Source: Trichoplax adhaerens (lineage: Eukaryota > Animalia > Placozoa). From it: DNA of 64,000 bases. The DNA lies in contig NW_002060953.1 of the NCBI RefSeq assembly GCF_000150275.1, positions 903,693 to 967,692 of the forward strand. Reading direction: 5' to 3'. Positions 2,149 through 50,101 of the stretch are shown here, piece by piece (position 1 is the first letter of the stretch; every line of letters begins with the position of its first letter). The notes below the pieces were generated by a model, which saw only the letters and a list, made by a program, of their open reading frames with translations, did not search any database and was not told where the DNA came from. Made by a program: the position numbers and the translations under genes.

Positions 2149-5050
2149 GTACCTAGTCCTTCAACATAGTGGCCTTTGGGGCATTTACCTATTCTTTTCA
2201 GAGAACTACCAGGCGATCCCTTCATCGTGTTCGTATTTACTGTACGTATTTGTATATGTACATCAACGTCAAACATGTTATATTTCTGTGATATCATATA
2301 TTACCTACTTTAGACTATGCAATACACTGGAGCTATATCGAAGCATAATAACAATTCGTCAAAGTTCATAAAATGATAGTCTTTATTGATCATTTTAACA
2401 TGTTATAGCTGTTATTAAAATCAAAATTTAGTTGATGGATGAATTCTATCATGGGAACATTGTATTAGCCGATTTTTATTTTCTCAAAGTATTGAACAAA
2501 ATCCTCTTGCCTAAGTCCAGATTTTCTAATTTCAGATGGAGTCAACAATACGGAGGAATCATCCATTTATGTTTCCCTTTCTATAGCCAACGAATTGCTG
2601 TAACTGATCCAGAATATATTAAGCATGTCTTATTTACACGTATTGATAATTACCGTAAGCCTACACTGATGAAAAGGTAATTAAAAAGTATGGATACTGA
2701 TAAAATTTCGTGTTATTTTCAAGATAAAAAATTGGCAAATTTTTGATGCTGGGATTTAACACTGAATTTGCTTTCATACTAGCTTCGTAGTAAATATTCT
2801 TGGCGAAGGACTTATCTTATTAGACGGTGAAAAGCATACTTCTGCTCGTAAAGTTATAAATCCAGCATTTAAATATAACAAAATTAAAAGTAAAAGAGGT
2901 TGTCTTAAAGCTATCTAGTTAATGGTAAAAAATTTACTAATAAATATTGCTTTGATACTTTCTCAGTAGTTATCTAAGATCTTATACCTTTAAAGTTCTC
3001 ATATAATTTCAAAGCTGTAGTATCACTAAATAAAATATGTAAACATTAGACTTGAACATCTTGCAAATAAATATGTCATACAATAACATAATTTCGGTTT
3101 CGTGACCGGGAAAAGATCTTGAACTATATTCTTTCTGTTCGATGCTAGAGTTGGTACCCATTTTTCAAAATATTGCTCAAGATTTGATAAATTACTGGCA
3201 AAATATAATTAACGAACATGGCGGTCAGAGAGCTACATTGGATGTTCATAACGATCTACCGCGAACGACGCTAGATATTATATGCAAAATGTGCGTTTGA
3301 TAATCCCTGTAATTCATTAACAGATGAGACCAATGAGGTTGCAGTTGCATTTGTGAAGGTTTCAGGTGGTTTAACTGTGGGGTAAGTTTAGGATACGTAT
3401 CTTCTAGAAATTTAGATCGCATCAAGGTCTTATCGTGATTCTAATCTTTTAAAATATGATATGATACGATTTTACATATTCATAAAGTTTTTGCAATGAT
3501 ATTTGAGTTACCGCTCATATCTTCCCAACACTGATGCATGTATGCATAATAAAGTTCCTAATAGCTTATTATAGTATGTACTANATTAACTTATTTGGCA
3601 ACTTATAGCTTAATAAGTTTTATGCGGGTTCAAAATATCTGCCCCAAATAAAATGGAGGCAAATCGCATTCTTGTTTATTTGCCATACTGCTGTCAAAAA
3701 AGTAATAGACGAAAAATTAGAGAAGACTGTTATAGATACTAAAATACAAATTCTTACCTTAAATGTACATATTAACGTACACTGCATTAAATAGATCTAC
3801 TGAATGCTTGTAACGTGAAGGCTTATATCTATAAACTCGCATCGAAATTTTCTATAGGAGAAGGAAAATGCTTATTAGATATTCTATTATCTATAAAAGA
3901 CGAAGAAGGCAACGATAGTTTCACGCCTAAAGAGCTACAATATCATGTTATGACCTTTCTGATCGCAGGCCATGAGGTTAGGACAAATGTATAATTAGAT
4001 AACTGACCTACATAATAATAGCAATAATAGTAAATGAGTATACGAGCCATTTAGTAACATTAATTTCTTAGCAATTTAAATACGATAATTGCATCCTGGT
4101 GTTAAGACTGCAAGTTCAGCTATGGCTTGGACATTACATGCACTGGCTAATAACCTTGACGTCCAAGAAAGGCTGCGTCAAAAAATTGGTAAGATTGTAC
4201 GGCCAAATGATAACAAACATGGAACACTTTTGATGAATTGCCATACCTTGATAACGTTATTAAAGAGTCGCTTAGATATGTAATAATCTATAAAAATATT
4301 AAAGTGATTATTATGCGGCTTGCAAGAGTTGCATGTTTGACAAGAAAGCATTTTGAGTTTATTGTAATTCATCGGCAGACTTACATAATCTCTGTATTTT
4401 ATCTTTTTTCAACCTACAGACTTTATCCACCAGTTCCATTTACTCTACGATAGACAATACATGACGTTGAGATAGGGGGATATTTTGTTCCCAAAGGAAC
4501 CGTTATTACGATTATACCACCCTATAGGTACTATGAGTACTGATGCACTTGTCAGCAATAAAATACGTTTTATATAGATGGAAAATATCATGTACTGTAG
4601 CATTTCATTTATTATCATTATTAGAATTTACACCTTACCACAGTATATATCTATAGTATGTCGCTAACTTTAAGTATGCAAAGTTTTGATTTTTAGTTAC
4701 TACTTATAGTTAATTCGTTAGCTTTTGTACGTTGCATGTATAAATATTTTACATTCTTAAAATTTTGTAGGAATTCAAGGTACTTACAAGATCCTTTAAA
4801 ATTTGATCCGGATAGATGGGACAACTCAGCTAAGAATATCAGTCCATATATTAATTTATCATTCCTTAGAGGTCCTCGAACTTGTATTGGCTCGAAGTTT
4901 GCAGAAACTGAACTTAAATGCGTTCTATCTTTACTATTAAGTCATTTCTCTTTCCGTGCTGTTCCAAACTTGCCCGTTAAAAGAAAGTTACGGATATCAA
5001 TGAGACCAGATCCAACTTTGAAACTTATCGTTCAACCTGTGTCATCTTAG
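2149..5050 (+). pseudogene. Cytochrome P450 (CYP4-clan-like), multi-exon, disabled
   Basis: Spliced exons give PSP..WPLGHL, NILGEGLILLDGEKHTSARKVINPAF, I-helix TFLIAGHE/TASS, K-helix ESLR, FDPDRW and heme motif FLRGPRTCIG. Lesions: TAG at 2167-2169, frameshift near 3288 (ICK/CAFD), frameshift near 4215, TAG at 4451-4453. The first (membrane-anchor) exon was not located. Confidence 0.85.
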
Positions 5051-5139
5051 TAATAGTTCAATCCTTACTATTCATTATCCTTAAATTTAGAAATTCTGAT
5101 TTAGTGGAATTTGCTCCATATGCAAGCTATACGAGCGAT

Positions 5140-5379
5140 CGCACATTAATATTGCCCCTCCTATCTAAACATTCAGCCATGTTTAATTCGCTTGGTAGTT
5201 TTTTGGCCAATTTTTCTGCTTCTTGAATTGTAATATCGACATTTGTCCATTCACCCGGTTCTGTATTACTGTCTTCCATGTCTGCATGAATATTCAATTG
5301 AAGTTGATAAAGTTCATCTTAATCATTCGGTGCTAATTCAATTTTTGCTAGGGCTTGTTGATAACAATAGAACGCTTGT
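5140..5379 (-). pseudogene. Remnant of the N-terminal TPR region of a TPR-ROCO family gene
   Basis: The reverse strand reads QAFYCYQQALAKIELAPND*DELYQLQLNIHAD...EAEKLAKKLPSELNMAECLDRRGNI. This parallels EGLSCYTQAIDEIE...LANGLQDEVRIAECLYRQSEI of the intact paralogs. It has an internal stop and abuts a gap. Confidence 0.65.
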
Positions 5380-7079
5380 NNNNNNNNNNNNNNNNNNNNN
5401 NNNNNNNNNNNNNNNNNNNNNNNNNNNNNNNNNNNNNNNNNNNNNNNNNNNNNNNNNNNNNNNNNNNNNNNNNNNNNNNNNNNNNNNNNNNNNNNNNNNN
5501 NNNNNNNNNNNNNNNNNNNNNNNNNNNNNNNNNNNNNNNNNNNNNNNNNNNNNNNNNNNNNNNNNNNNNNNNNNNNNNNNNNNNNNNNNNNNNNNNNNTG
5601 TCAATAGTGATTATGATCAGCTACAAGTCTATCAATTGGTTTTAGCATCATGTCAGTAATAACTTGACTTAAAATAAACATAAGAAGAAAATCGGTACGA
5701 TACATTACAACTACAGTAGTATCTAATTATCATAAGGAATAAACTATCATTATAATTTTCTCTATGATATAAACTTGACCATCTATTAAGTCTAATGAAG
5801 ATGACCCTTTTGCACCAATGTATAGCTGAAGTTATAACCACCTGTTTAAACTTGTGCCAACGATTAATTTACTGAAATCCAGTGGATCATACAGTTGGTC
5901 GTTTCAATTTTACTTGTATATTACCACCAACGTTATCAGAAGGTGTCAACAGCCGAATTTTCGCTCTTTTCCAATCTTTTGTCAGAATGAGTCAGTAACT
6001 CAACGATTCTAGCTTGTAATTTATTAATTAGAGATAGATGGCCAATTGAGGAATGAGTTCGCAGCGAACGGTAATGTTCCTCGATGCTAAACATCAAAAA
6101 CCTGGATATTGATGCCAAGTTAATATGAACTATAAAAATGATTGCACTGTCTATGCATATAATGAGGCTGCAGTTGAACCTAAATGCTAAACTAATCTAC
6201 ATATAGGTTTAATCATCGACCAATTCAAACTAAACTCTGTTGCAACTTGTAAGTGCATGATTTAAATACCGTATATCAGTACAGTATAGGTTCCAAGAAT
6301 AGTCGATCACTACTGACTGCTGTATCCCTCAAATTTTCCTGAAATTTAACTCGTCGTAAGTCAGAGTATCGTCTATGGTATGCAATGTACATTGCACTCG
6401 TATTAGGGAAGTCATGAACTACAGTGCATCTAGTAGTCTATGATATAGTACACACAGACAGTAGAACTCTATATGGGGTATATGGCATAGCGTGACTTTC
6501 TATATTTATTTTAATACTTATTTAGTAGCTCATAACCATAGACTGCCGTGAGAGATTCTATGCTAGAGTACAGAAAACTATATACAGTGGGGTGTTGAGT
6601 TACTGTTAAGGTTAGAGGTAAAAATAGAACTATAATTTACATATTAGAATACGACAAATTCATGGTATTCTGATCAGTAGTAATAATGTTTACATAAATA
6701 CTATAGTAGTTTCTATATTGGATTAATGATGGTCCGCTGTGAAATGTTGTTATTAATAATAATCTAGAGAAGTGTACAATATGGTAGAATGTTACTATAC
6801 TGATTGTAGCTACGAATGCTGCGAAAAGTATAGCATATGATTGTTAATGTAACATAAGTACTTTACAACTTAAGATGCATGCGGTACAATACTTCTCTAA
6901 TATACTTAAATTCATGATTGGATGTACCGTGTATACTCGTACAAGGAAGTTCCATTTAAATAGTAAGTTAATTAGATTCGTGTAAGGTCCGACCGAACCT
7001 GAATGTATTACCGTTTACTACTAATACACAACAGAAAGCATATAAGCTAACAACTTAGATTATTCTAGTAGTTCTTTTT

Positions 7080-8390
7080 AGAAGTATTTGGTAATTGTGT
7101 TCGGATAGAGTAGAACTGCGTATATACATCATCGTTGCATAAGATCTAATAAAGTTCTAATTTTTTACAAAATTTGGATCTTCGTGATTGATTATATCTC
7201 ATTCCTGCATTTACATATACTAGCATGAAGTAAATTAATAGAGATTAATCAATCGACGTCAGTTATAATAATTCCTTTACAGCCTAAATTATCAGAGTAA
7301 ATCACTTCTCCTAAATCTTCCAGATATATTAACATTGATTTTATTTTATGGTCACTTTTGTATAATCCATTATCTTGGGCCAAACTTACCATTTCTTGCA
7401 TTGTCGTAATATTATGCACTCGTACCCTTCTAATTTGATTCATGATGGAAAATATCGCTTCATTATCTTCATCATGGATAGATTTGCTTAATTTGGTAGC
7501 CATATTATACCATCAAATAGGAACAGGTTTACGAATAAATAGTAGCAATTGTTCAAATATCTTAAGAACATGATGTAAACGAAGACAACATTGCTGATGC
7601 AGATCTGAAGCTAATGAACTGGCAGATCAGGACTGCAATCAATAATAATGCCAGAAGAGTAGAGATTGATCGTATAAGAAGGCATAGAAAATATTAATTC
7701 ACAGACAAACTTATTGAATTGACAATCTTTTTCTTCTACTTTTGAAATGCAATCACCATCGTAAGCTACTAGAATAATGATAGGTAACGAACATTGTGCA
7801 TTATTTCTATCAACATTAACATTAATTTTGCTTTGGCTACTAATTTGGCTAGATAATAATTAGGTGTTGATGAGTAAGCTATCAAATTCTGCAAATCACT
7901 TTATAAATGAGTAGTAGTTAATTCTGCATTGGGCTTATGACATCGACAAATACCCGAACATGTAAAGCAGCAACGACACTGTTGCTATAAATTGCTATGT
8001 TGACAATAAACAAGTTAGTTTCGCTACTTCGCTAGAACATGTCTTTAACGTGAAGCAACAGTTTTGTGCACTATAACTCAACAGTCTTAAATAGTTTGTC
8101 AGATAATGTGAAGTAAGGAAAGAAGGCTCCAGTAATACGAACCTTCCACTGTTGTTAAATGTATCAGCTATTACGGTTAACAATTTACGCTCAGTTACAG
8201 TCGTATCTCTAGCAGTATTCGATATATTTGCATAATTATGATACTAATTTTATCTTATGAGTTATTAATATATGATTACATCGTCTAGAATTTTTAATTC
8301 AATTTCATCACTTAATTAATCAACATTCTATTAGATTCAAATAATTATGTAATATACTATGCTGGTAAGACTGAATGATTTAGCGTAACA
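7080..8390 (-). pseudogene. Roc-COR remnant of a ROCO gene
   Basis: Fragments ILDDV, SLPIIILVAYDGDCI, MPSY...YSSGIIIDC, LRLHHVLK and MLIYLEDLGEVIYSD...GIIITDVD* match the intact paralogs. It has several stops and frameshifts, and no P-loop is recognisable. Confidence 0.85.
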
Positions 8391-33503: not shown

Positions 33504-36500
33504 TCATATGCTTCTCTTCCGTTCGGCTATTTTTTCTTCAAGTTGGTTCGCTATGGAAGTCTTTTCCATCTTACGTAAAGCTGCAACCACGACAAAAATA
33601 TCAGCATTTTGCCCGGCCTTATTTTCCCACGATTTTAGAACTTTGTACACTTTATCGTAGCGGCTATGTTCTCTTAATTTAATTTCGTCAATTTCTGTCG
33701 CTGACAAACGCAACAAGTTCCCCAAACGTAATAAATCGCCTATATCGAGTTTCTCTGCTATTATATCGAAGAACTCTGTATCCATTTCTATATTAAAAAT
33801 AAAATGGAGAACATGAACTATTGTTCAAGTCGCCAAGGTTGTATCTGATCTGAAGCATGATTAGCAAGAATAGCAAATCTNNNNNNNNNNNNNNNNNNNN
33901 NNNNNNNNNNNNNNNNNNNNNNNNNNNNNNNNNNNNNNNNNNNNNNNNNNNNNNNNNNNNNNNNNNNNNNNNNNNNNNNNNNNNNNNNNNNNNNNNNNNN
34001 NNNNNNNNNNNNNNNNNNNNNNNNNNNNNNNNNNNNNNNNNNNNNNNNNNNTTTCTTTTGCTTCCACAACTCTAGTACTCGATATTTTTTTTCGTAATCA
34101 CTATCAATTTTAGTGCTTGATACAATTTCATTTATCTCATTATATGTTAAATGTAATGAAATTCCCAATTGAAATAATTTACTTATAGGAAGTTTCGTAG
34201 CGATCATGTCGAAGTACGTCCTAAAAAGTTCTTCTATATTAAAACACAGTTGATAGTATTAGTAAATTAGATCCATTTGATTCTCCCAGCTTATAATTAG
34301 GTCTAAATAGTATCATTGATAGTCATTATCTTCAACAATTTCACCTCATCACAACCGTGCATCAAACTGGTATGCTAGTTTATAAAGCAAACTGTTACTA
34401 ATACTACCTGTTAACAAACGCTAATGTCAGTATGAAAATAAATTTACATACAATGAGCCATTATAATAAATCATTGGAAGTGTACATTAAAAGCTATTGC
34501 ATACTGTATCATAAAATATTTATTTCTTGATAATGACAAAGTTTTACATTTCTCATACTATTATAATAATTATAAAATTGTTGAGAGATGAAATAAAGAC
34601 TGTGAATTTTTTTTAAAATATCAAGTAAGTATACGCGTGTTACCTTGTCTACTCGAGGTTATTGGTATTTGATGTTTCTGTTGGACTTGTTGCGGTTGAT
34701 CTAGATAATATAGTTTCGTTACATTAGATCTTTTAAAACCGAAGATTGTAATTTTCCGTAACCAATTAACGGACGATCAAAATTTTGATTAGATAAATAC
34801 AATCACTTCTTATTCATACAATAAATTATTATAGTTCAATAAATGGTGAGGTTTATTCAGTAAACGTAGAGTAAGTTATAAGCCTTGTCCTACAAAAAAG
34901 CCCTTTACTACATGATCTATCAATCAAAATTACTAAAATATCTGACATATACAGTTCTGGGTGATTTTAAAGCGCTCAAACTAGATAAGCTTTACTAAAA
35001 TTGTAACGCTGTATGTGGTCGGAGTTATCCTAATATTAAAAATCTATTTAAGACCTAATATTAAAAATCTATTTAAGACCACAACAATGATGAATAAAGC
35101 GCTTTTAGTGGTTTAGTGGTTTCTCCAAGTTCTTCGTGTGTTACACTGACTACTATAGTTGGTTAGGGATCGCTAAAGAAAGCGTCGTTCCTTTTTTAGT
35201 AGATTGCCTAGTGCCTTTACTCTAGATTGGTTCTAGTCTTTATTACTGGCGTAACGATATAGCAGTACTAGTGATAAGAGAGAAAATATCTCTTCTCACT
35301 GTGGTATTATACTTAGTGAAATTTNNNNNNNNNNNNNNNNNNNNNNNNNNNNNNNNNNNNNNNNNNNNNNNNNNTTACATTGAATCCAATTTTGATCTCC
35401 TTCCTTGTATTCTTCGGTTATACTTGGGGGTGTATTACATTCACTACATTTGACGAAATATCGACAAGCAGCCCCTTTAAACTTGACCATCCTTTCATTG
35501 ACAGTGGAGATGAGTTTGTTCTTGACAATTTCGTGTGGCCGTTTGACAAATATAGAATTTGTAACCTTATCGATAATCGATTGACTCCTCTTGGGCTCAT
35601 TTATTTTCTGATAGCAATATTGTAAACCGATATGAGATTCCTCTTTCTTAACTACAAGGTAATGATTGTCATTTGCTAAATAATATTTGGCACATTGATA
35701 GTATAATTCTACGTCCGTATTATTCCATTCCTTTAAACAAGAAGATAACAAGCAATAATAAATTCCATCTGGAAGATATGCAATATCTGTACGCTCGTAT
35801 CCGATGTAGAGCCAATCTGATTGATGATATTTTGGTAAATCAAATGGCTTAACATCATCTCGTAACAAATATGGAACAAAGTATTGACATTCTTCGCCGT
35901 TGTCGTTCTTCTCATTTGTAATTGAACATAGAATGTCATAAGCATGCATGAGTGCCAATATAGTTTGCTTACTATTGTCATCTAAATTAAATTTATAAAT
36001 AGCATGATCAATGTAGGATCTTGATAATTTTCCAGTTTTGCTGGCTATCTCATAGTCGCGTTGTATCTGTGCACCTCCTTGTACAAAATCTTGTAATTGA
36101 ATANNNNNNNNNNNNNNNNNNNNNNNNNNNNNNNNNNNNNNNNNNNNNNNNNNTTGCACTTGAGAATATCTAATTTGATTGATAATAGAAGATGCGGGTT
36201 GATTGTTACTGTTAGTAGGGAGCGATTTATTTAATATTCTAGCCATGATATACCATCGAATAGGTATAGGATTCGTAATAAATGGCAGCGATTGTACAAA
36301 TGCCTTAATGATACCATGTAAACGAAGACAACATTGTCGACGCTGCTGCAGTGTCGACGGAGTACTATCAAGAGGATTGCAATCAAAAATAATACCAGAA
36401 GAATAGATATGACTGGCATAAGAAGGCATGTGAGACGTCAATGTAGACACAAATTGATTAAATCGAGTACGTCCATCTTCTTCATTGGTAATACAATCGC

Positions 36501-39179
36501 CATGAGAAGCTACTAAAATAATAATAGGTAATGAATGCTGTGAAGGTGGTAAATCCTGTCCGTCTTCACTTTTAATGCTCACATCGACGGTACTTTGGCT
36601 TGTATGGCCAGCTATGATTGATGTAAGCCATTCTTGCATAGCTTGTAAATACGTCGTTTTGAGTGATTGGTTGTTCCTTGTTGTTACCTTGTCGTTAATG
36701 TCTTGCTTAATATTAAATACTAAAATATAAATACTATTGACGGAGATAAAGGGATAATGAGTAAGATGATAGACGGCATGACCTGCGAAATCCCATATTT
36801 TAACATACTGATTTTTATCGTCTTTTTCTGTATTTTGATTTTCCATGGACGAACAGTAATATTGATCTAAGTCTCGTTTAGACTGTGGTTCTATTGCAAT
36901 CTCTGTCCTTGCTATCGCTGCATCTTGCGTAACGATATTCGTTGCAGAAGAATCGACACTGTGTTGTTGCCCATTTGACACAGATGGATTATTGGTTATA
37001 ATGGGTTGATCTATTGGATCCATGTCGGTTACTTGCTGAATGATGTTATCTCGACTATCGATACTTGTTAGGGCTATGTCTTGTATGACTGTCGTGACTG
37101 TATCGTCTAGTATTTCAGTCCAATCACAACCCTCTAAGTTCATAATATTATAATATTCAGTCTCTACCATAATATCCGAATTCTCAGCCACTTGTGTTGG
37201 AGATGGACTGTTGAGTGGTTGCTTGGTAAATATTTTTCGAACAGAAGTTTTGCCCACATTGCGAGGGCCAATAAACATGCCTCGTATTAAACGATTAAAG
37301 CAATGGCCATGTTTTAATGCTTTGCTATATGCATTGTAATATTTCTTTTCTTGCAAAGCTGTAGAACAACAAAATACAGAATAGGGTTACGGTTATCCAT
37401 CGCTCTCTTGTCTACTACCGTATTAAAACTCCACTTACCTTTCTCTTGTACGTCTTGATTGTTGTGACTGCCGTCGATAGTATTTGCTGGCGCTGTAACG
37501 TTGTTGGTTTGATTCGGTTGAAATAGTTCAACGATACTTTTGATCCAATTTCTCGCTATTGATGTCGGCGATTTCTGCTGCCGGAGAGCGATTTCGATAT
37601 TCTTTTTGGTCATTGTAACTAGGCCATCATTTCCGCTTAAGGTTGCGATATACAGTGACTTGTTAAAGTTATCCAGAGCCTGATCGATCTTGCCTTGGTC
37701 ATGATAGACACATCCTATGTTGTGATATGAGTGCGCAACATGGGGATGATTGTGACCAAGGACTGACAATCCAATTTGCAGTGACTTGTTATGCATCTCC
37801 ATAGCCTGATCGTACTTGCGTTGGTCATGATAGACACATCCTATGCTGTGATATGACCACGCAACATGGGGATGATTGTGACCAAGGACTGCCAATCCAA
37901 TTTGCAGTGACTTGTGCAACATATCCACAGCCTGATCGTACTTGCCTTGGTGATAATAGACACATCCTATGCTGTTATATGACTGCGCAACATGGGGATG
38001 ATTGTGACCAAGGACTGCCAATCGAATTTGCAGTGACTTGTTATGCATCTCCATAGCCTGATCGTACTTGCGTTGGTCATGATAGACACATCCTATGTTG
38101 TAATATGAGTTGGCAACATGGGGATGATTGTGACCAAGGACTGCCAATCGAATTTGCAGTGACTTGTTATGCATCTCCATAGCCTGATCGTACTTGCGTT
38201 GGTCATGATAGACACATCCTATGTTGTAATATGAGTTGGCAACATGGGGATGATTGTGACCAAGGACTGCCAATCCAATTTGCAGTGACTTGTTATGCAT
38301 ATCCACAGCCTGATCGTACTTGCCTTGGTGACGATAGATAACTCCTATGTTGTTATATGAATTGGCAACATGGGGATGATTGTGACCAAGAACTGCCAAT
38401 CGAATTTGCAGCGACTTGTCATACATATCCACAGCCTGATCGATCTTGCCTTGGCGATGATAGACAACTCCTATGTTATTGTATGACCACGCAACATCAG
38501 GATGATTGTGACCAAGGACTGCCAATCGAATTTGCAGTGACTTGTTATGCATCTCCACAGCCTGATCGATCTTGCCTTGGCGATGATAGACAACTCCTAT
38601 GTTATTGTATGACCACGCAACATGGGGATGATTGTGACCAAGGACTGCCAATCGAATTTGCAGTGACTTGTTATGCATATCCATAGCCTGATCGTACTTG
38701 CACAAGTCCCCGTAGAGGCGCCCAATTTGATGATAACTATCGGCAAGACGAGCATCCTTTTCGTTTAACCATTTTAATTTCATTTCCAACGATTTCTTAC
38801 CGTCTTGCAGTGCTCCGTTGAAATCTTCTTGGCATCTCTTAATCTCGCTTTCTCTTTGTAAACATTGAGCCATGCTCACTTCATCTTGCAGTTTAGTAGC
38901 CACAGTTTGTCCCTTTTCACTCCATTCAACAGCTTCCTTGAATTGATATTGTAAAGTGTAAATGTCACAAAGACCAAGATAAATATCGCATGCAAGTCGA
39001 TCAATATCCGCACTAGGATTCGACAACGAAGCAATCGCATCGACAGCTTGTGTATAACAAGATAGTCCGTCCACCAACTGGAAGGCAGCCTTGCACGAGT
39101 TGCCCTTTTCGTACAGTGATTGTATACGGGTATGGTGAGGAAGCACACTCGTGGAAGAGACAGATTCATCATCAGCCAT
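33504..39179 (-). CDS. TPR-Roc-COR-zinc ribbon protein with two death domains (ROCO family), copy B
   Basis: Exon 39179-37439 encodes the TPRs. A phase-1 intron leads to an exon from 37358 with G1 GPRNVGKT, switch-I SPT, G3 WDFAGH, G4 ASHGD, COR with YFVPYLL, and KCSEC..IQC. Then a 57-nt exon 34700-34644, death-domain exon 1 from 34233 (EELFRTYFDMIATKL..., runs into a gap) and death-domain exon 2 at 33787-33504. Three gaps interrupt the model. Confidence 0.85.
37625..38755 (-). repeat. Coding tandem array of nine 126-bp (42-aa, kinesin-light-chain-type) TPR units
   Basis: Consensus HPHVAxSYxxIGxVYxxQxKYDQAxxMHNKSLQIRLAVLGHN. Units 38011-38136 and 38137-38262 are identical at DNA level. Confidence 0.97.
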
Positions 39180-42100
39180 CTTTTCCTTCACTCAATTCAA
39201 AAGTATGTTAGTGAAAGACTTGAACGACAGGTTAGAGACAAATAAGATTGAAATCAAGCTTCGTTGCAACCATGAATGACTAATCATCGGATCGATATTA
39301 TCTCTGCGTATTCATGAGGTTATGTCGGAATGGTTGTACTTGCGTGCTAGTCGTAGTTCAACAGAACAACATCAATTATTCCATTATACACAATTTTCAA
39401 GCATCAACAAATCAACTTCTACAATATCGTCTATCAATTTCGCATGGAAGATTATCCGAAAATCATTCAATCAATCTCTGTCAATGATTACTGAAGACAA
39501 CGCTATCGGACATTCGTGTGCTGACATCAATCAATACCAAACAAAGTCCAAGGAGTAGACTAATTGACGTGTACATTAACAAAATGCACTCCATCTTACA
39601 AACAGATTATACTCGTAATCATAATAACCATCCAACAGCAATCGTTTTATTCTAATAGACAATAGCAAATGAATGCTAGCCACATCAATGATAGTGCAAA
39701 ATAAGAAAGGATGCTTGTAATATAGTTTCGTTGGAGTCGTTTACCTATCTATAATTTCTATTTTTACTTGAAATACAATGTACTGTATAATGATGGATAC
39801 CCAAACGGAATAGGTCACTTACCAATAGATGTTTTAAAAATCGGCTAATAACAACTTGATGATTTTGCTGGGACGTCGATTTAATCCTATCAATCCGACT
39901 GCGCGTTGCTTATTGCAAACAGGAGCAAGTGGATAAAAAGAGAATCGACAGGTGACATAAAACTCTACTCGGCTAAACAGCTCTATCCAACTGCATATAC
40001 ACTAAATACACGCTTTGATCAGCGATTACAGACTACTAACTCATTGGTTATTTCGTACCTATAAGTAGTCCTTGCAAAGTCCTGCATGAGGAAGGGCACT
40101 ACTGATAACCATGAAGCTTGCTTGGCTACAAATCCCAGTTGAACCTGCGGCCATGCCGCGCTTTTACTCTTTAGTCTCATGTGGATGATGTAATAGCTGA
40201 CGGATAAAGGTTGCTATAGTAACTGCACCATTAAATTAGGGTTTTATTAATTAACTTATGCTTTGCTAGGTCCTCTATATTATATTGCTGTACCGCGTAC
40301 AGGTACTCCTCTCTTTAGTATATAGTTTATATCGCTATATTATGATCTAATGGCGACGCCTAAATTAAACTACTTAATTCAATCTATTGACGAAAAATTG
40401 AATGTATACTCAAAGCTCTCGAGGCTGACCATTGACTGAACTACTGACCTTTAAATTTCTACATTATCCATGATAGACACTTGTTGATTACTTAAATATG
40501 TGGGCTCTCTCTGCATAAGCTAGATGCACCGTAAGCGTCCACCAAAATGGGTAATAGCCTTAAATATCGTTTAATTGTAATTCTGAATTATTAATATATA
40601 CGTTAAAATATCTATACAGAACAGAGAAAAGATACTAAAGTTCATATACAATCATCTTAGTAGGATTCTATAAAATGCTTTTTAGTAGGTGTATTTGTAT
40701 AAGGCTTGTTATGAGCTGCGGCTCTCGTTTGCAAAAATTAATTTAAGGACATATTTCTACGATCGTATTTTGTTGATAAGAAATATTCCTCATTCCGTTC
40801 TATTCAGTCTTGGTAACCCTAATCGAAAACTAAATATCCATACCAAATAATTATTGCAATACCGCTACTTTATGCAGCGCATGAGTATAATGCACTTTAT
40901 TCCTATACGATTTTTTTAGTGGGTTACTTCTCATTCTACCTTCGACACGAATCATGTTCCAAAATGTACAGTGGGACAACTAAATATTGGTAAAGGGCTA
41001 CAATTAGCGGCAAATTTATGTTATTTTTAAATAAAATTAGGTTTCTTTGCAATGACTTGTGCATAGTCATAAGACCTTATGAAATTAAAACAGCTCTAAT
41101 TTGTATTAGTTTTATTAAATACGAGTTTAAGATTAACCTACGAGTATCTTCCCTACTAAATTTCTATGTCTTGTTAGCTTAGTAAGCCGTCAATCATGTT
41201 ATTTGCAAAAGTTCATTGGCATCATGCCAATGAACTATTGCATGGGTAGATACAAGTTACCAACAAAATATCGTTCTCTCTAAGTAAGGATAGTTGACAT
41301 ATAATCCTTATCCATTTTCTTCTATTACAGGCATTGCAGTACAACAGGGCACTATCCTCTCAGCACTTACGCTCGCTGCATTCTCGCGCCAAAGAAGATT
41401 CTTAGTCAACAAGTTCAGCTTTGATCTATGCTCACAGAACTCATTCTCAAGGATAGGTAATCATTTCTACGAGCATACCTTAATAGCTTTCAACAAACAA
41501 GAGAAGTATTTTATGATCGAAGTAGAGTAAAGTAAGATCAAATTAAAATCTGACAGGATTGGCGTGAGTACTGTTTGGCCTGATTGCAAATTGCATGCTA
41601 TCGATACAAGATGCAATCCTTCATACATACTGGAAGTACTGCAAATCCATAGCAATCCTACATGATTACTACCTTAATTTTATTCAATAATTAACAATCA
41701 ATGAGTTGTTAATATACGCCGTTTAAAGAAAATATTTAGTATACTTTTATAAACTGTTTGACAAATGACAGTAAAAAATCAACGGAATACAGTAGCGCAC
41801 GATGAAGATGATATCAAGCGATTCAGCAAGATGGCTTAGTTATTGGACTCATCGTCGATGATGATCGCCAATTAAACAGTGGCCAACAGTAATTTCTGCT
41901 ATCGGAAGAACAATCTTCATATTAATTCAAGGAGGCTAAAAGATGTAACATAAAAAGAATCATCTACGCTTACTTCTCGTATGCACTAATTTGCACTACT
42001 TTAACATAGATGTCGAAGGCACGCTAATGTTGGCTTCAGACGATAGAGCTAAAATGGACATGGTTAGTACTTTCATCAACTACATGGAGGAGAATTGCCA

Positions 42101-46400: not shown

Positions 46401-48629
46401 AAGACCTAAATAGATATTGACAAACGTGGTAAATAGCTGGATCACTGAAATCCCATACTTTCACATATTGATTATCTTCAAATTTGTCTTTATTTTCGTT
46501 TATTCTAGGCGCATAAGATTCTGCAAAACTAAATTTAGACTCAGTCTTATTAGAAGCATCTGCTATATTATCACTACTCATAGAAGACTGCTTATCGTCA
46601 TCCTTTACAATGGTTAAAGATAGATTATCTGCCATTGTTAGCTGATCTTGTTGACTTTTATTTGATTTTTGCATGTCGTTATTTTGTTGACTTTCTAGCT
46701 CTGCTACGGAAAATTCTCTTATAGCGGTCTTGATTTTATCATCTAACACCTCAGTAAAATTATATGTCTTTGAATTTTGAAGACAATAAAATTGATTGAA
46801 TTCAGTTTTCAATATGCCATCAGAATGATTAACAACTTTATCTGGAGGTTTATTCTTGTTTGATTCTTGTTGAGTAAACACTTTCGCAATAGATGATTTG
46901 CCAATACTAGGTGGGCCAATAAACTTACCATGTATCAAATCATTAAAGCAGTAGCAATTATTCAAGGCTTTATTGTATAGATTATAATATTTCTTTTCTC
47001 CTAAAACTGTAAATTGAAACGGAAGTTAGAAGAATGATACACAGATTAGACAGTATTTATTTATATTGGCTATGTAAATTAACATACTAAAAAATCAACT
47101 ACAAGTTTACCTTCATCTTCTGTGTGTCGAATAATATCACTATCAGGATTGCTACCGTTACTATTCCTATTTGTTAACGTTGTAAGATTGTTAGCATCGG
47201 TGCCTGTAAACACTCCAAACCATCTAACCAAATCGTCGAAATATCTTTCAGCTAGTGTTGTACTTTGATAATAATGTGCTTGTTGCTGCTGACGAGTTGT
47301 TGCGACATGATTTCTAGTCATCTTAACGTAGGGATGATTCTCGCCTAAAGCCGGTAGGATAGCTTTAATTGTCTTGTGAAACATAGAAAGTGCCTCATCG
47401 TACTTGCCCTGTTCCTTATAGATAACCCCTTGGCCGTTATATAATTCAGCAATAAAGCTATAATCGAAATCGACGGCTGACGGTCGAATTTGCATGGATT
47501 TATTATATATCGAAAGAGCGTCTTCATACCTGTTTAGATCTATATATATTTTTGCTATACCAAATAATGTCTTTGCAATTTCGGGATGATCGCGATTAAG
47601 CGTTGATAGTTGCATTTGAAGTGATTTCTCAAGGATACCACTGGCAAGATTGTATTGGCCTTGTTTGACATAGACATTTCCAAATTTGCGATATGCTCGA
47701 GCAATAGCAAAATGATTTTTTTGGGGAAAGATTGTATGTCTCATATCTAGTGACAAGTTATATTTAGAAATAGCCTGTTGATAGTCCCCATTATTGCTAC
47801 CAACATCCCCCATATGCTCATAAGTGTCCGCAATATGGGCATGATTTTTAGAAAGGAGTGCTAATCGAATGTATAATACATTATTTAGCATCGTAAAAGC
47901 CACTTTATGCTGGCCAAGATATGAGCGACAAACTGCCATTATCTGAAGTGAATTCGCTATAAGAAGATGACGATTACCGAATAAGCGCAATCGAATTTTG
48001 TGAGCAATATTTAGCATAGAAAGTGCCTTTTTAAAATTGCCTTGCCGCACATAAAAAATTCCTTCCGTATGATAGGAGTATGCGATATCGGGATGGTTTT
48101 CATCCAATACCTTCAATCGGATTTCTCGTGCTTTTCGAATCATAGCCAGCGATTCTTGATATTTGCCGCCATCGTCGTAAATACGTGCAAGTTGATGATA
48201 GGAATGAGCAACATCTGTATGGAGGTATGTACCTAGGTAGTTTATTTTTATATCCAGAGATTTGCCACAGCATTCGAGCGCTTTATCGAAATCACCTTGC
48301 CATCTTAAAATTAAAGCTTGCTTATCTAAATAATGGGCTATTCTGATTTTATCTTGCAGTTTGTCAGCTAGATATTTCCCTATATCGTAGTATGATTTAG
48401 CTGTTTCCCATTGATTTTTTAACGTGTAAATATAACAAATATGAAGATAGATATCACATCGAAGTCGATCAATATTATCGCAAGGAGTAGATATCGATTC
48501 AATATGATCTAAGGCTTGTCTATAGTGAACTAGAGCTTCCTCTAGATTATAAAAAGTAACATATTCTTGGCCCTTTTCGCAAAGTGATTGTATATCATTC
48601 GGAAACTGTGTTAATAGATCTTCATCCAT
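43477..48629 (-). pseudogene. TPR-Roc-COR-zinc ribbon-death domain gene, copy C, with a single frameshift and degenerate G motifs
   Basis: Exons 48629-47111 (7 diverged 42-aa TPRs), 47006-44857 (2150 nt, one base short; frame break near 46160), 44155-44129 (ERWIDVRDD) and 43733-43477 (type-B death domain DPRNYFHSIASCVGIDWTKLATVLDP...). G1 GPPSIGKSS, G3 WDFSDP. Confidence 0.8.
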
Positions 48630-50101
48630 CTGTTTCAATTTGATGTGAAGAAAAAGCAATCAATAGGTATATTAAAAGAGATTAGCTACTCTAGCTTATA
48701 ATATCAAAACTGAATCGATTCTAGACTCTAAGGAAAGTTAGAAGAACGATAATTAAATTAGACTTAGTTGTATTGCAATGCACACCAAATTATATCGTAC
48801 TTCACAACAATTGCCAGACTATAATATCATTTTATTTTCGATCTAATTTTATGCTAATATATATACGTAACATATATATATTAATAATGGTCAGCATCTA
48901 TTCTATAATTAATAATGGTCAGCATCTATTCTATTACCTCTATTGTCAATATCAGTGAAAGAGTAGGTAGTAATGATTGACGAGTAAAGATTACCATAGT
49001 AACTTGAACGACAGATAATTGTTAAACAAAATCATTGGTGAGTATTTAAATCTAGAGCTCCTCCTATATAGGAGAAAATCAATGATGGTTCATGCTTCTA
49101 CTAAAAGTCTTCTACTTAATTGGGTCTTTGGTAATTTATTCAATAATTACTTTTTACGAATTCATCGTTATCTTGTAAGGGCGCTCGGATCTATCTATAA
49201 TATTTTATTTACATATTTTTAATCAAATTTGAGTTTTTATTCATGGTCTCTGTTGTTATTACTTTGGATCAAAGTTTAAGCATTGGGCTATCGACAGCAA
49301 AACTTACATAAGTCATTCTAAATGCGTATACTTTAGTCATCAGCTGTTGTTACACAGAAAGTTTTCAATTTACCTTCAATAAGATTTTGCTTCAGTAACA
49401 TACTGCAAAACCAAGTAGGATACGTTAAAAATTTATTGCACGCAAGTACGCTCTATAAAAGTATGTAGAACAGGTTTAAAGTCAATCCGCTGTCTTTATA
49501 ACACTTGCCCTGTAGCATAAGATCATTTTATCATCTAGTGAACTACATCCAGGATTGATAATAAATTGACAGTATATCATGCCGTTAATATTCTAAAGTT
49601 TTTCTACTTTTCATAGACATGGATAAACTACTTGTCCTGTAACGATTTTTTTTATGATTATCATAAGATTTTACCCACAGTCAATTTGGTTATAAGCTCA
49701 CTGTTGTACGCGTGAACTGAAAATAAAATTACGTGCTATCTAAATTAGCTGAATAATAATTGCAATATTAAACGACAAATGAACGAGCTAACTAGCCACT
49801 ACTGATGTAGTTAATTCTACATATGAGTACATACATCTAAAACTTGACTTCAAATACCTGTTATATCAATTATTGCAAAGTTAATAAATTTTAAAATACC
49901 AGTAGCTATGAAAATAACAAACGTAGATATTACTTGATTATGAATTTCTATTTTATTCGTTAACATTTGAAGCATTCGAAAGTGTACTTTACAGCATATC
50001 AAATATCAGAGTTTTACATTGACAAGATCTAATTCTGAGCTCTATTATTTTGCAATTACAAATGTGTCTCGGTTAGTAAACCGCAAGAGAAGTTTGTATA
50101 T

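Follow-up and report, generated by a model that had tools for sequence, protein, structure and literature searches.

A tandem array of near-identical TPR units with a diversified predicted binding face in a Roc-COR-Death gene of Trichoplax adhaerens

Introduction

When tandem repeats are almost identical and differ mainly at a few codons, it may be asked whether these codons form a binding surface that is diversified by selection, or whether the repeats are merely young and drifting. This question is raised by an array of tetratricopeptide repeat (TPR) units in a 64,000-nucleotide stretch of Trichoplax adhaerens DNA (assembly GCF_000150275.1, contig NW_002060953.1, positions 903,693 to 967,692), here called the window and numbered from its first letter. 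A first-pass annotation of the window had described the units as mosaics with hypervariable codons in helix A and had proposed a combinatorial recognition code under active concerted evolution. The analysis described below points, with a probability of roughly 0.7, to an array that is the ligand-recognition domain of an intracellular TPR-Roc-COR-Death protein and whose groove has been diversified under selection. To judge by the sequences, diversification of the array over evolutionary time has affected its predicted binding face; the combinatorial recognition code would be a further, conjectural step.

The repeat array

The array occupies positions 37620-38753 on the minus strand and consists of nine TPR units of 126 bp, each encoding 42 residues. 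It lies inside an open reading frame (ORF) of 625 codons (37314-39191, minus strand); the frame stays open and the array contains no N. Tandem Repeats Finder reports the repeat at 37653-38701 (period 126 bp, 8.3 copies, 91% matches, score 1566) as the only large tandem array in the window. Its periodicity is far above chance: identity at a lag of 126 nt is 0.86-0.98, whereas the flanks give about 0.25 and the TPR domain of a neighbouring paralogue (47079-48659) gives 0.34-0.52. The units are the following:

38628-38753, minus strand: TPR unit 0, a diverged first unit, with 27-38 of 126 nt different from units 1-7
37746-38627, minus strand: TPR units 1-7, regular 126-bp units, 82.5-100% identical at the nucleotide level and with 26 of 42 columns invariant
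37998-38249, minus strand: units 4 and 5, identical in DNA (0 of 126 nt different)
37620-37745, minus strand: TPR unit 8, the capping unit, regular to codon 31 (helix A) and followed by the C-terminal cap

The number of units is as first described, and the almost invariant scaffold that had been ascribed to all nine is found in the seven regular ones and in the half-regular unit 8, not in the diverged unit 0. The cap-type tail of unit 8 is common to the last units of paralogous arrays. Among units 1-7 the mean identity is 89% for nucleotides and 80% for amino acids (range 69-100%), which indicates that most differences are non-synonymous. In the 29 codons of the scaffold, units differ at just 0-4 of 87 nt, and all units except 4 and 5 can be distinguished by at least 7 nt. 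Units 4 (38249-38124) and 5 (38123-37998), already recognized as identical over all 126 nt, evidently are a recent single-unit tandem duplication.

The residue strings that had been read in helix A agree exactly with the translation (positions 5, 8-9, 12, 15-16 and 18). The first variable site does change by whole codons: at position 5 units 1 to 8 carry TGG, TGG, AAT, AAC, AAC, CAG, TGG and CAC (W/W/N/N/N/Q/W/H). Both proposed mosaic units exist. Unit 7 has GCG-TGG at codons 4-5 as in units 1-2, and its codons 12-33 are identical to those of units 4 and 5; the four consecutive nucleotides in codons 4-5 that set it apart from the latter are those of units 1-2. Unit 7 is the clearest single case of apparent exchange between units. 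Unit 8 combines the C-V-Y-H-D helix A of units 4, 5 and 7 with the K-I-D-Q-A of units 1-2.

Position of the variable residues

Profile searches assign the repeats to the TPR superfamily, and specifically to the 42-residue kinesin light chain (KLC) type, with matches in nine stretches to both Pfam TPR_12 (448 bits, 2e-137, cut-off 30.1) and TPR_10 (326 bits, 2.3e-100, cut-off 27.5). In an AlphaFold2 (AF2) model built from a 60-sequence alignment (predicted local distance difference test score, pLDDT, 95.2; predicted template modelling score, pTM, 0.90) twelve helix pairs, three divergent ones followed by nine 42-residue TPRs, are predicted to form a TPR superhelix. Helix A comprises unit positions 1-16 and helix B positions 20-38. 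Foldseek neighbours of the model are APPBP2, OGT, KLC1/2 and consensus TPR (CTPR) proteins, and the TPR domain of KLC1 gave a template modelling (TM) score of 0.78 normalised to the target. A single-sequence AF2 model was beta-rich, had a pLDDT of 39.6 and was meaningless; it was dropped for the alignment-based model. Single-sequence predictions of such near-perfect repeat arrays should not be trusted.

Unit positions correspond to canonical TPR positions plus 3. This register follows from the Pfam TPR_1 profile, position 1 of which falls on unit position 4, and the same register was obtained from alignment with a consensus TPR structure. When the 39 units from this gene and six paralogues are taken together, variability is highest at positions 15, 5, 16, 12, 28 and 8, which are canonical TPR positions 12, 2, 13, 9, 25 and 5. 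The variability of helix A falls on a single side of the helix (moment 0.59-0.68; p about 0.001 by permutation), and the same moment test gave no one-face pattern for helix B. Magliery and Regan described TPR positions 2, 5, 9, 12, 13, 33 and 34 as hypervariable and located on the concave face, and positions 2, 5, 6, 9, 12 and 13 contact the ligand in HOP complexes (PMC1261162). The array varies at canonical positions 2, 5, 6, 9, 12 and 13, which are these published ligand-contact positions. The earlier placement of the variable codons on the groove-lining face of helix A thus agrees with both the canonical concave positions and the modelled helix.

Selection on the predicted groove

Six codons, at unit positions 5, 8, 9, 12, 15 and 16, were chosen beforehand from the literature. 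According to the method of Nei and Gojobori (NG86), dN/dS at these codons is 1.8 in this array, 1.9-3.5 in arrays with at least three pairs and 2.6 when pooled over all units. For the other 36 codons the values are 0.72 in this array and 0.23-0.75 in four arrays, with as exceptions the array on scaffold C449 (1.44) and the single pair of the second gene on scaffold C1381 (C1381b, 0.98). The ratio of dN at the six codons to dS of the whole unit is 4.64 here (bootstrap 1.97-14.4) and 2.1-4.4 in four other paralogous arrays. In the codon-level comparison that had been suggested for these units, the six concave codons thus evolve faster than silent sites.

A tree-based count over 38 unique units places positions 5, 12 and 15 above the neutral expectation after Bonferroni correction. 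The pooled omega of the six codons is 2.5 (binomial p=0.0055), and the six codons differ from the rest with a Fisher p of 6e-7; recombination inflates such tree-based counts of change. With this caveat about recombination, the data argue for diversifying selection at the predicted binding-surface positions.

The gene and its domains

The array belongs, by the predicted gene structure, to the first exon of a TPR-Roc-COR-Death (ROCO) gene. The reading frame starts with an ATG at 39179 and exon 1 ends with ...GAGAAAG/GT at 37439. Protein models of Trichoplax sp. H2 (H2) were used in defining the other parts:

38754-39179, minus strand: N-terminal 142 residues from the ATG (MADDES...), with three divergent TPR-like helix pairs before the array
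37439-37619, minus strand: C-terminal cap helix (AF2 H518-529) and low-complexity linker to the splice donor
37359-37438, minus strand: predicted 80-nt intron, phase 1 (GT at 37438-37437, AG at 37360-37359), from the sequence and H2 protein models
36154-37358, minus strand: first part of exon 2, Roc GTPase with P-loop GPRNVGKT and switch II DFAG, ending at a 50-N gap
35377-36102, minus strand: exon 2 after the gap, COR region (COR-A 17 bits, cut-off 35.3)
33504-33785, minus strand: C-terminal Death domain (Pfam PF00531, 1.3e-11, 44.9 bits, cut-off 22.6)

The helix pairs of the N-terminal domain in the AF2 model are H14-31/H35-50, H57-76/H80-97 and H100-116/H120-137, and its 142 residues are 91-94% identical to paralogues and H2 proteins with the same start Met. 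The exon junction agrees with the H2 models (...QEK/ALQEKK). Roc is recognized by Pfam PF08477 (6e-10, 39.8 bits, cut-off 27). COR-A scores just 17 bits in this gene because the 50-N gap removes the start of COR; in paralogues on scaffolds C1381, C1375, C1295 and C1239, which are 91-96% identical, it scores 44-46 bits, above the cut-off. The Death domain is homologous to the C-terminus of H2 protein P0124, from which we infer that it is linked to the same transcript. Full-length H2 relatives (1246 and 1477 amino acids) possess TPR, Roc, COR and Death in this order in one protein, with the same exon junction, and the best protein matches overall are from Trichoplax sp. H2 and T. adhaerens. Coupling of Roc-COR to a Death domain is also found in human DAPK1, which has a kinase and ankyrin repeats in place of the TPR array.

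Profile searches of all exons scanned revealed no NACHT or NB-ARC domain. The gene is therefore not a NOD-like receptor (NLR), although its product could work like one, with Roc-COR as the nucleotide switch.

Two features of the Roc domain (36154-37358) deserve mention. About 150 residues of low complexity are inserted between the P-loop and switch II, and SHGD is found at the expected position of the N/TKxD guanine-specificity motif, likewise in H2 and in T. adhaerens relatives. A second Death-like ORF (33818-34207, minus strand) lies just upstream of the Pfam-positive Death domain and is split by a gap of 171 N (33881-34051), so that the gene may have either one or two death folds.

The window harbors at least three further genes of TPR-Roc-COR-Death architecture, and also a PIDD-like gene. 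The neighbouring TPR-Roc-COR genes at 47079-48659 and about 53.4-55.2 kb (both minus strand) have old, diverged units (lag-126 identity as given above) or just four units. It is this subfamily, and not the ROCO genes of the window in general, that shows high internal conservation.

Paralogues and turnover of units

The genome searched comprises 105.6 Mb in 1414 pieces (ca. 32% GC). Close paralogues were found on scaffolds C1295, C1381 (two genes), C1375, C1239 and C449. Their flanks, including non-coding DNA, are 93-97% identical, whereas the arrays are just 84-90% identical; the family appears to be young and to originate from segmental duplications. The arrays contain 4, 5, 8, 8, 9 (this gene) and 12 units, the array on C449 ending at the scaffold end. 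Units have thus been gained and lost, and in the intact C1295 gene (C1295b) one unit type has undergone a period-2 expansion. Together with the identical pair in the present array, these numbers bear out the gain and loss that the proposed reshuffling of units implied, and the exchange of units that it also implied is seen at the family level.

Exchange was examined with the pairwise homoplasy index (PHI). At the codon level, p is 0.001 for the whole family and 0.04-0.25 for this array alone, so that recombination between units, as had been suggested, is supported family-wide and is weakly indicated within this array. The nucleotide-level PHI for this array (p about 0.001-0.0025) was discounted, since multi-nucleotide codon differences create adjacent compatible sites.

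Strict concerted evolution does not describe the array. The nearest relatives of units 0, 3, 6 and 8 are found in another gene; for unit 0 these are unit 0 of the first C1381 gene (C1381a, 7 nt) and unit 0 of C1295b (8 nt). Units 0-4 pair one-to-one with units 0-4 of C1295b, which is positional orthology, and identity within the array is no higher than between paralogues.

C1295 was also considered as the other haplotype of this locus. This was rejected, since the two are not arranged collinearly and a separate orthologue of C1295 exists in H2. Upstream of the intact gene, scaffold C1295 carries a partial copy of the TPR exon (2378-3301, plus strand) with an internal TAA stop and a two-residue deletion in one unit; it probably is a decaying paralogue.

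The genome holds many further arrays of this TPR unit. One of them is the following:

C1413:6715000-6724999, positions 3583-7575, minus strand: array in a single open frame of 1331 codons, with hypervariable positions as in the studied array

This C1413 array has 28 in-register 42-residue units with a mean nucleotide identity of 87%, some units being identical. In seven other arrays, variability once more peaks at positions 5, 12, 15 and 16, together with 8 and 34. The fetched flanks of six other large arrays (for C1413, 3.5 kb downstream) revealed no Roc, COR or Death domain, which indicates that the hypervariable TPR regime is not tied to ROCO genes. On scaffold C1333 (10000-16999, minus strand) the protein sequence of a block of five units is repeated without change, units 6-10 matching units 1-5 and unit 11 matching unit 1. 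Either several units were duplicated in tandem as a 630-bp segment, or this 18-kb scaffold has been wrongly assembled here. The C1333 arrays end in a long E/K/Q-rich tail. Genome-wide, about 40 COR-A matches score above the Pfam cut-off, several of them clustered (C1404, C1392, C1372 and C1389), well above the published number of at least 17 T. adhaerens ROCO genes.

Comparison with Trichoplax sp. H2

Three H2 proteins were compared at the protein level with genes of the present, H1-like genome:

P0121 and C1295b: N-terminal domain 142 of 142 residues identical; array and linker 562 of 564; Roc-COR 613 of 615
P0001 and C1375: N-terminal domain 140 of 142; array and linker 396 of 396; Roc-COR 484 of 512 (94.5%)
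P0124 and C1381a, its closest relative: N-terminal domain 94%; array and linker 82.6%, with equal unit number; Roc-COR 96%

Protein searches found no H2 orthologue of the gene studied here, P0124 being nearest to C1381a instead. No repeat-number polymorphism among isolates was seen in the two clear orthologue pairs, a comparison of low power because the lineages are very close. Such arrays are, as far as these two pairs indicate, not unstable over short times, which says little on longer times. The active change that had been proposed is at odds with these pairs, since in both the units are equal in number and order, and just 2 of 564 and 0 of 396 residues have changed. The matches of P0121 and P0001 to the H1-like arrays also indicate that this assembly resolves such arrays correctly.

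Two further contrasts were noted. C1375 and P0001 are 100% identical across TPR array and linker but only 94.5% identical in the adjoining Roc-COR region, which suggests paralogue conversion in one lineage or a chimeric gene model. In C1381a (C1381:426112-431313) and P0124, Roc-COR is 96% identical and the five-unit array 82.6% at unchanged length; the pair is either an orthologue pair with a strongly diverged array or a paralogue without a counterpart, its orthology being uncertain.

Interpretation and alternatives

If the array is the diversified ligand-recognition domain proposed here, germline duplication, loss and gene conversion of units together with diversifying selection would have produced paralogues whose binding grooves differ. 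Ligand binding there would change the nucleotide or oligomer state of Roc-COR, and the C-terminal Death domain might then recruit a death-fold partner and cause a cell-death or immune-type output. This would be NLR-like logic in which Roc-COR replaces the NOD switch.

Several results weigh against this interpretation. The assignment to the concave face derives from homology numbering and not from measured coordinates. Counting the minimum number of changes without a tree yields 32:5 non-synonymous to synonymous changes at the six codons, near the neutral site ratio (omega about 1.1), so that an omega above 1 depends on counting recurrent change, and whole-unit omega is about 0.7-1.1. In units that are positional orthologues between this gene and C1295b, dS is 0.113 and dN 0.079, as compared to 0.068 and 0.040 in the N-terminal non-repeat domain of the same paralogues; that both rates are raised in the array indicates that conversion contributes besides point substitution. 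For positional-orthologue units of two paralogues, the rise of dS and dN above the N-terminal domain was put at about 2.4- to 3.3-fold, which speaks for conversion no less than for point substitution. In the two orthologue pairs of H1-like genome and H2 the arrays are unchanged in unit number and order. Three assembly gaps interrupt the gene, and the window contains 12 N runs.

The near-neutral counts, the whole-unit omega and the unchanged arrays would also be expected after recent tandem duplication with relaxed constraint, where exposed helix-A positions drift and no adaptive diversification takes place. The same positions are moreover the most variable ones across all TPRs (PMC1261162). 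We consider this explanation unlikely. Drift cannot raise dN above dS, whereas in five arrays dN at the six codons exceeds the unit dS by a factor of 2.1-4.6, with a bootstrap lower bound of 1.97 in this array. Three sites exceed the neutral expectation after correction, and whole-codon replacements are found beside a scaffold that hardly varies.

The gaps, and the location of several paralogues on tiny scaffolds, could mean that near-identical repeats were wrongly assembled and that the number of units, their order or the identical pair is an artefact. This is improbable in view of the open frame over 625 codons and the N-free array, and the 12-unit and 8-unit arrays of two paralogues are found again in independently assembled H2 proteins. 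Furthermore, units other than 4 and 5 are separable by the nucleotide differences given above.

Still less probable is a housekeeping scaffold, similar to KLC or nephrocystin-3 adaptors, whose TPR domain binds one conserved partner and in which variation is irrelevant to specificity. Relatives carry the database names 'Nephrocystin-3' and 'Kinesin light chain', and KLC1/2 are the best sequence matches among solved structures. However, these names are automatic and the gene lacks a kinesin-binding heptad region, having Roc-COR-Death instead. The gene belongs to a clustered young family in which repeat number varies and groove positions are accelerated, quite the reverse of what a conserved adaptor would show.

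Somatic or within-clone rearrangement of the array into a repertoire, for which there is just the analogy with lamprey variable lymphocyte receptors and a speculation about brown algae (PMC3341825), is highly improbable, as two lineages that were cultured and assembled independently have identical germline arrays in two paralogues and no donor cassettes or dedicated recombinase were seen. Nothing points to a somatic process; the diversification has taken place over evolutionary time.

Relation to known systems

The predicted groove of the ROCO protein described here has its closest counterpart in the fungal NLRs with TPRs of high internal conservation (HIC). In Podospora anserina, Dyrka et al. 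(2014) found near-identical units, repeat-number variation and selected concave-face sites, and they modelled the fungal repeats on KLC2 (PMC4986451). Similar to the Podospora NB-ARC/NACHT-TPR proteins, the array has 42-residue TPRs of the KLC type with near-identical units and repeat-number variation, selected concave-face sites, and exchange both between units and between family members. Unlike in the fungus, the switch is Roc-COR, the TPR domain is N-terminal instead of C-terminal, the effector is a Death domain and the host is an animal. Repeat number is polymorphic among Podospora isolates, whereas two orthologous arrays do not vary between H1 and H2. The HIC definition demands that repeats be more than 85% identical over 100 residues or more (PMC4986451). 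Units 1-7 reach the mean identities of 80% (amino acids) and 89% (nucleotides) given above, and only the pairs 1-2 (90%) and 4-5 (100%) pass 85% at the protein level.

The brown algae Ectocarpus and Saccharina harbor candidate immune receptors of the LRR-ROCO (LRR, leucine-rich repeat) and NB-ARC-TPR types (PMC3341825, PMC11378527). The LRR-ROCO proteins also combine a ROCO GTPase with a hypervariable repeat sensor, show diversifying selection on the concave face and belong to clusters with rapid birth and death, and the NB-ARC-TPR proteins have 126-nt, 42-residue TPR units. In the algal ROCO proteins the sensor is an LRR domain in which each repeat is one shuffled exon, whereas the nine TPR units found here share one exon and change by in-frame duplication, loss and conversion of units. 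The algal ROCOs are also without a Death domain.

The best sequence and fold matches of the array are the KLC TPR, consensus TPR and 42PR structures (PDB 3NF1, 6FUZ, 8BU0 and 4Y6C). KLC and consensus TPRs bind peptide cargo in a concave groove lined by the A helices, but KLC and the designed TPRs are six-repeat conserved adaptors or designed proteins, without Roc-COR-Death and without paralogue-specific groove variation.

A catalogue by Civiero et al. (2014; PMC4104024) already contains at least 17 T. adhaerens ROCO genes, and TPR, CARD and Death domains occur among them. That catalogue covers domain architectures, without repeat conservation, hypervariable positions or changes in unit number. 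A survey of placozoan immunity regarded NLRs with TPR or WD40 domains as unlikely pathogen sensors because they lack LRRs, and did not mention Roc (PMC6321704). In the literature we found no description of a regime of near-identical TPR units with a hypervariable groove for placozoans or any animal.

Significance

A wider reading, which we put forward tentatively and which may well be wrong, is that placozoans possess in their germline a repertoire of intracellular receptors, ROCO-Death proteins and others, which sense non-self and whose TPR grooves are diversified under selection by duplication, loss and conversion of units, as an animal counterpart of the fungal HIC-NLRs. The targets would then be the intracellular bacteria of Trichoplax, pathogens or conspecifics, and repeat number and order should be polymorphic at such loci in wild populations. 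The combination of a fast-evolving TPR groove, a young clustered family, variable repeat number and a death-fold output is the signature by which recognition receptors have been nominated in other systems. If the interpretation is correct, the strategy of near-identical repeats with a hypervariable groove would reach from fungi, bacteria and algae to an early-branching animal, and a Roc-COR GTPase could replace the NOD switch. It would also provide concrete candidates for the recognition of endosymbionts or other non-self by Trichoplax.

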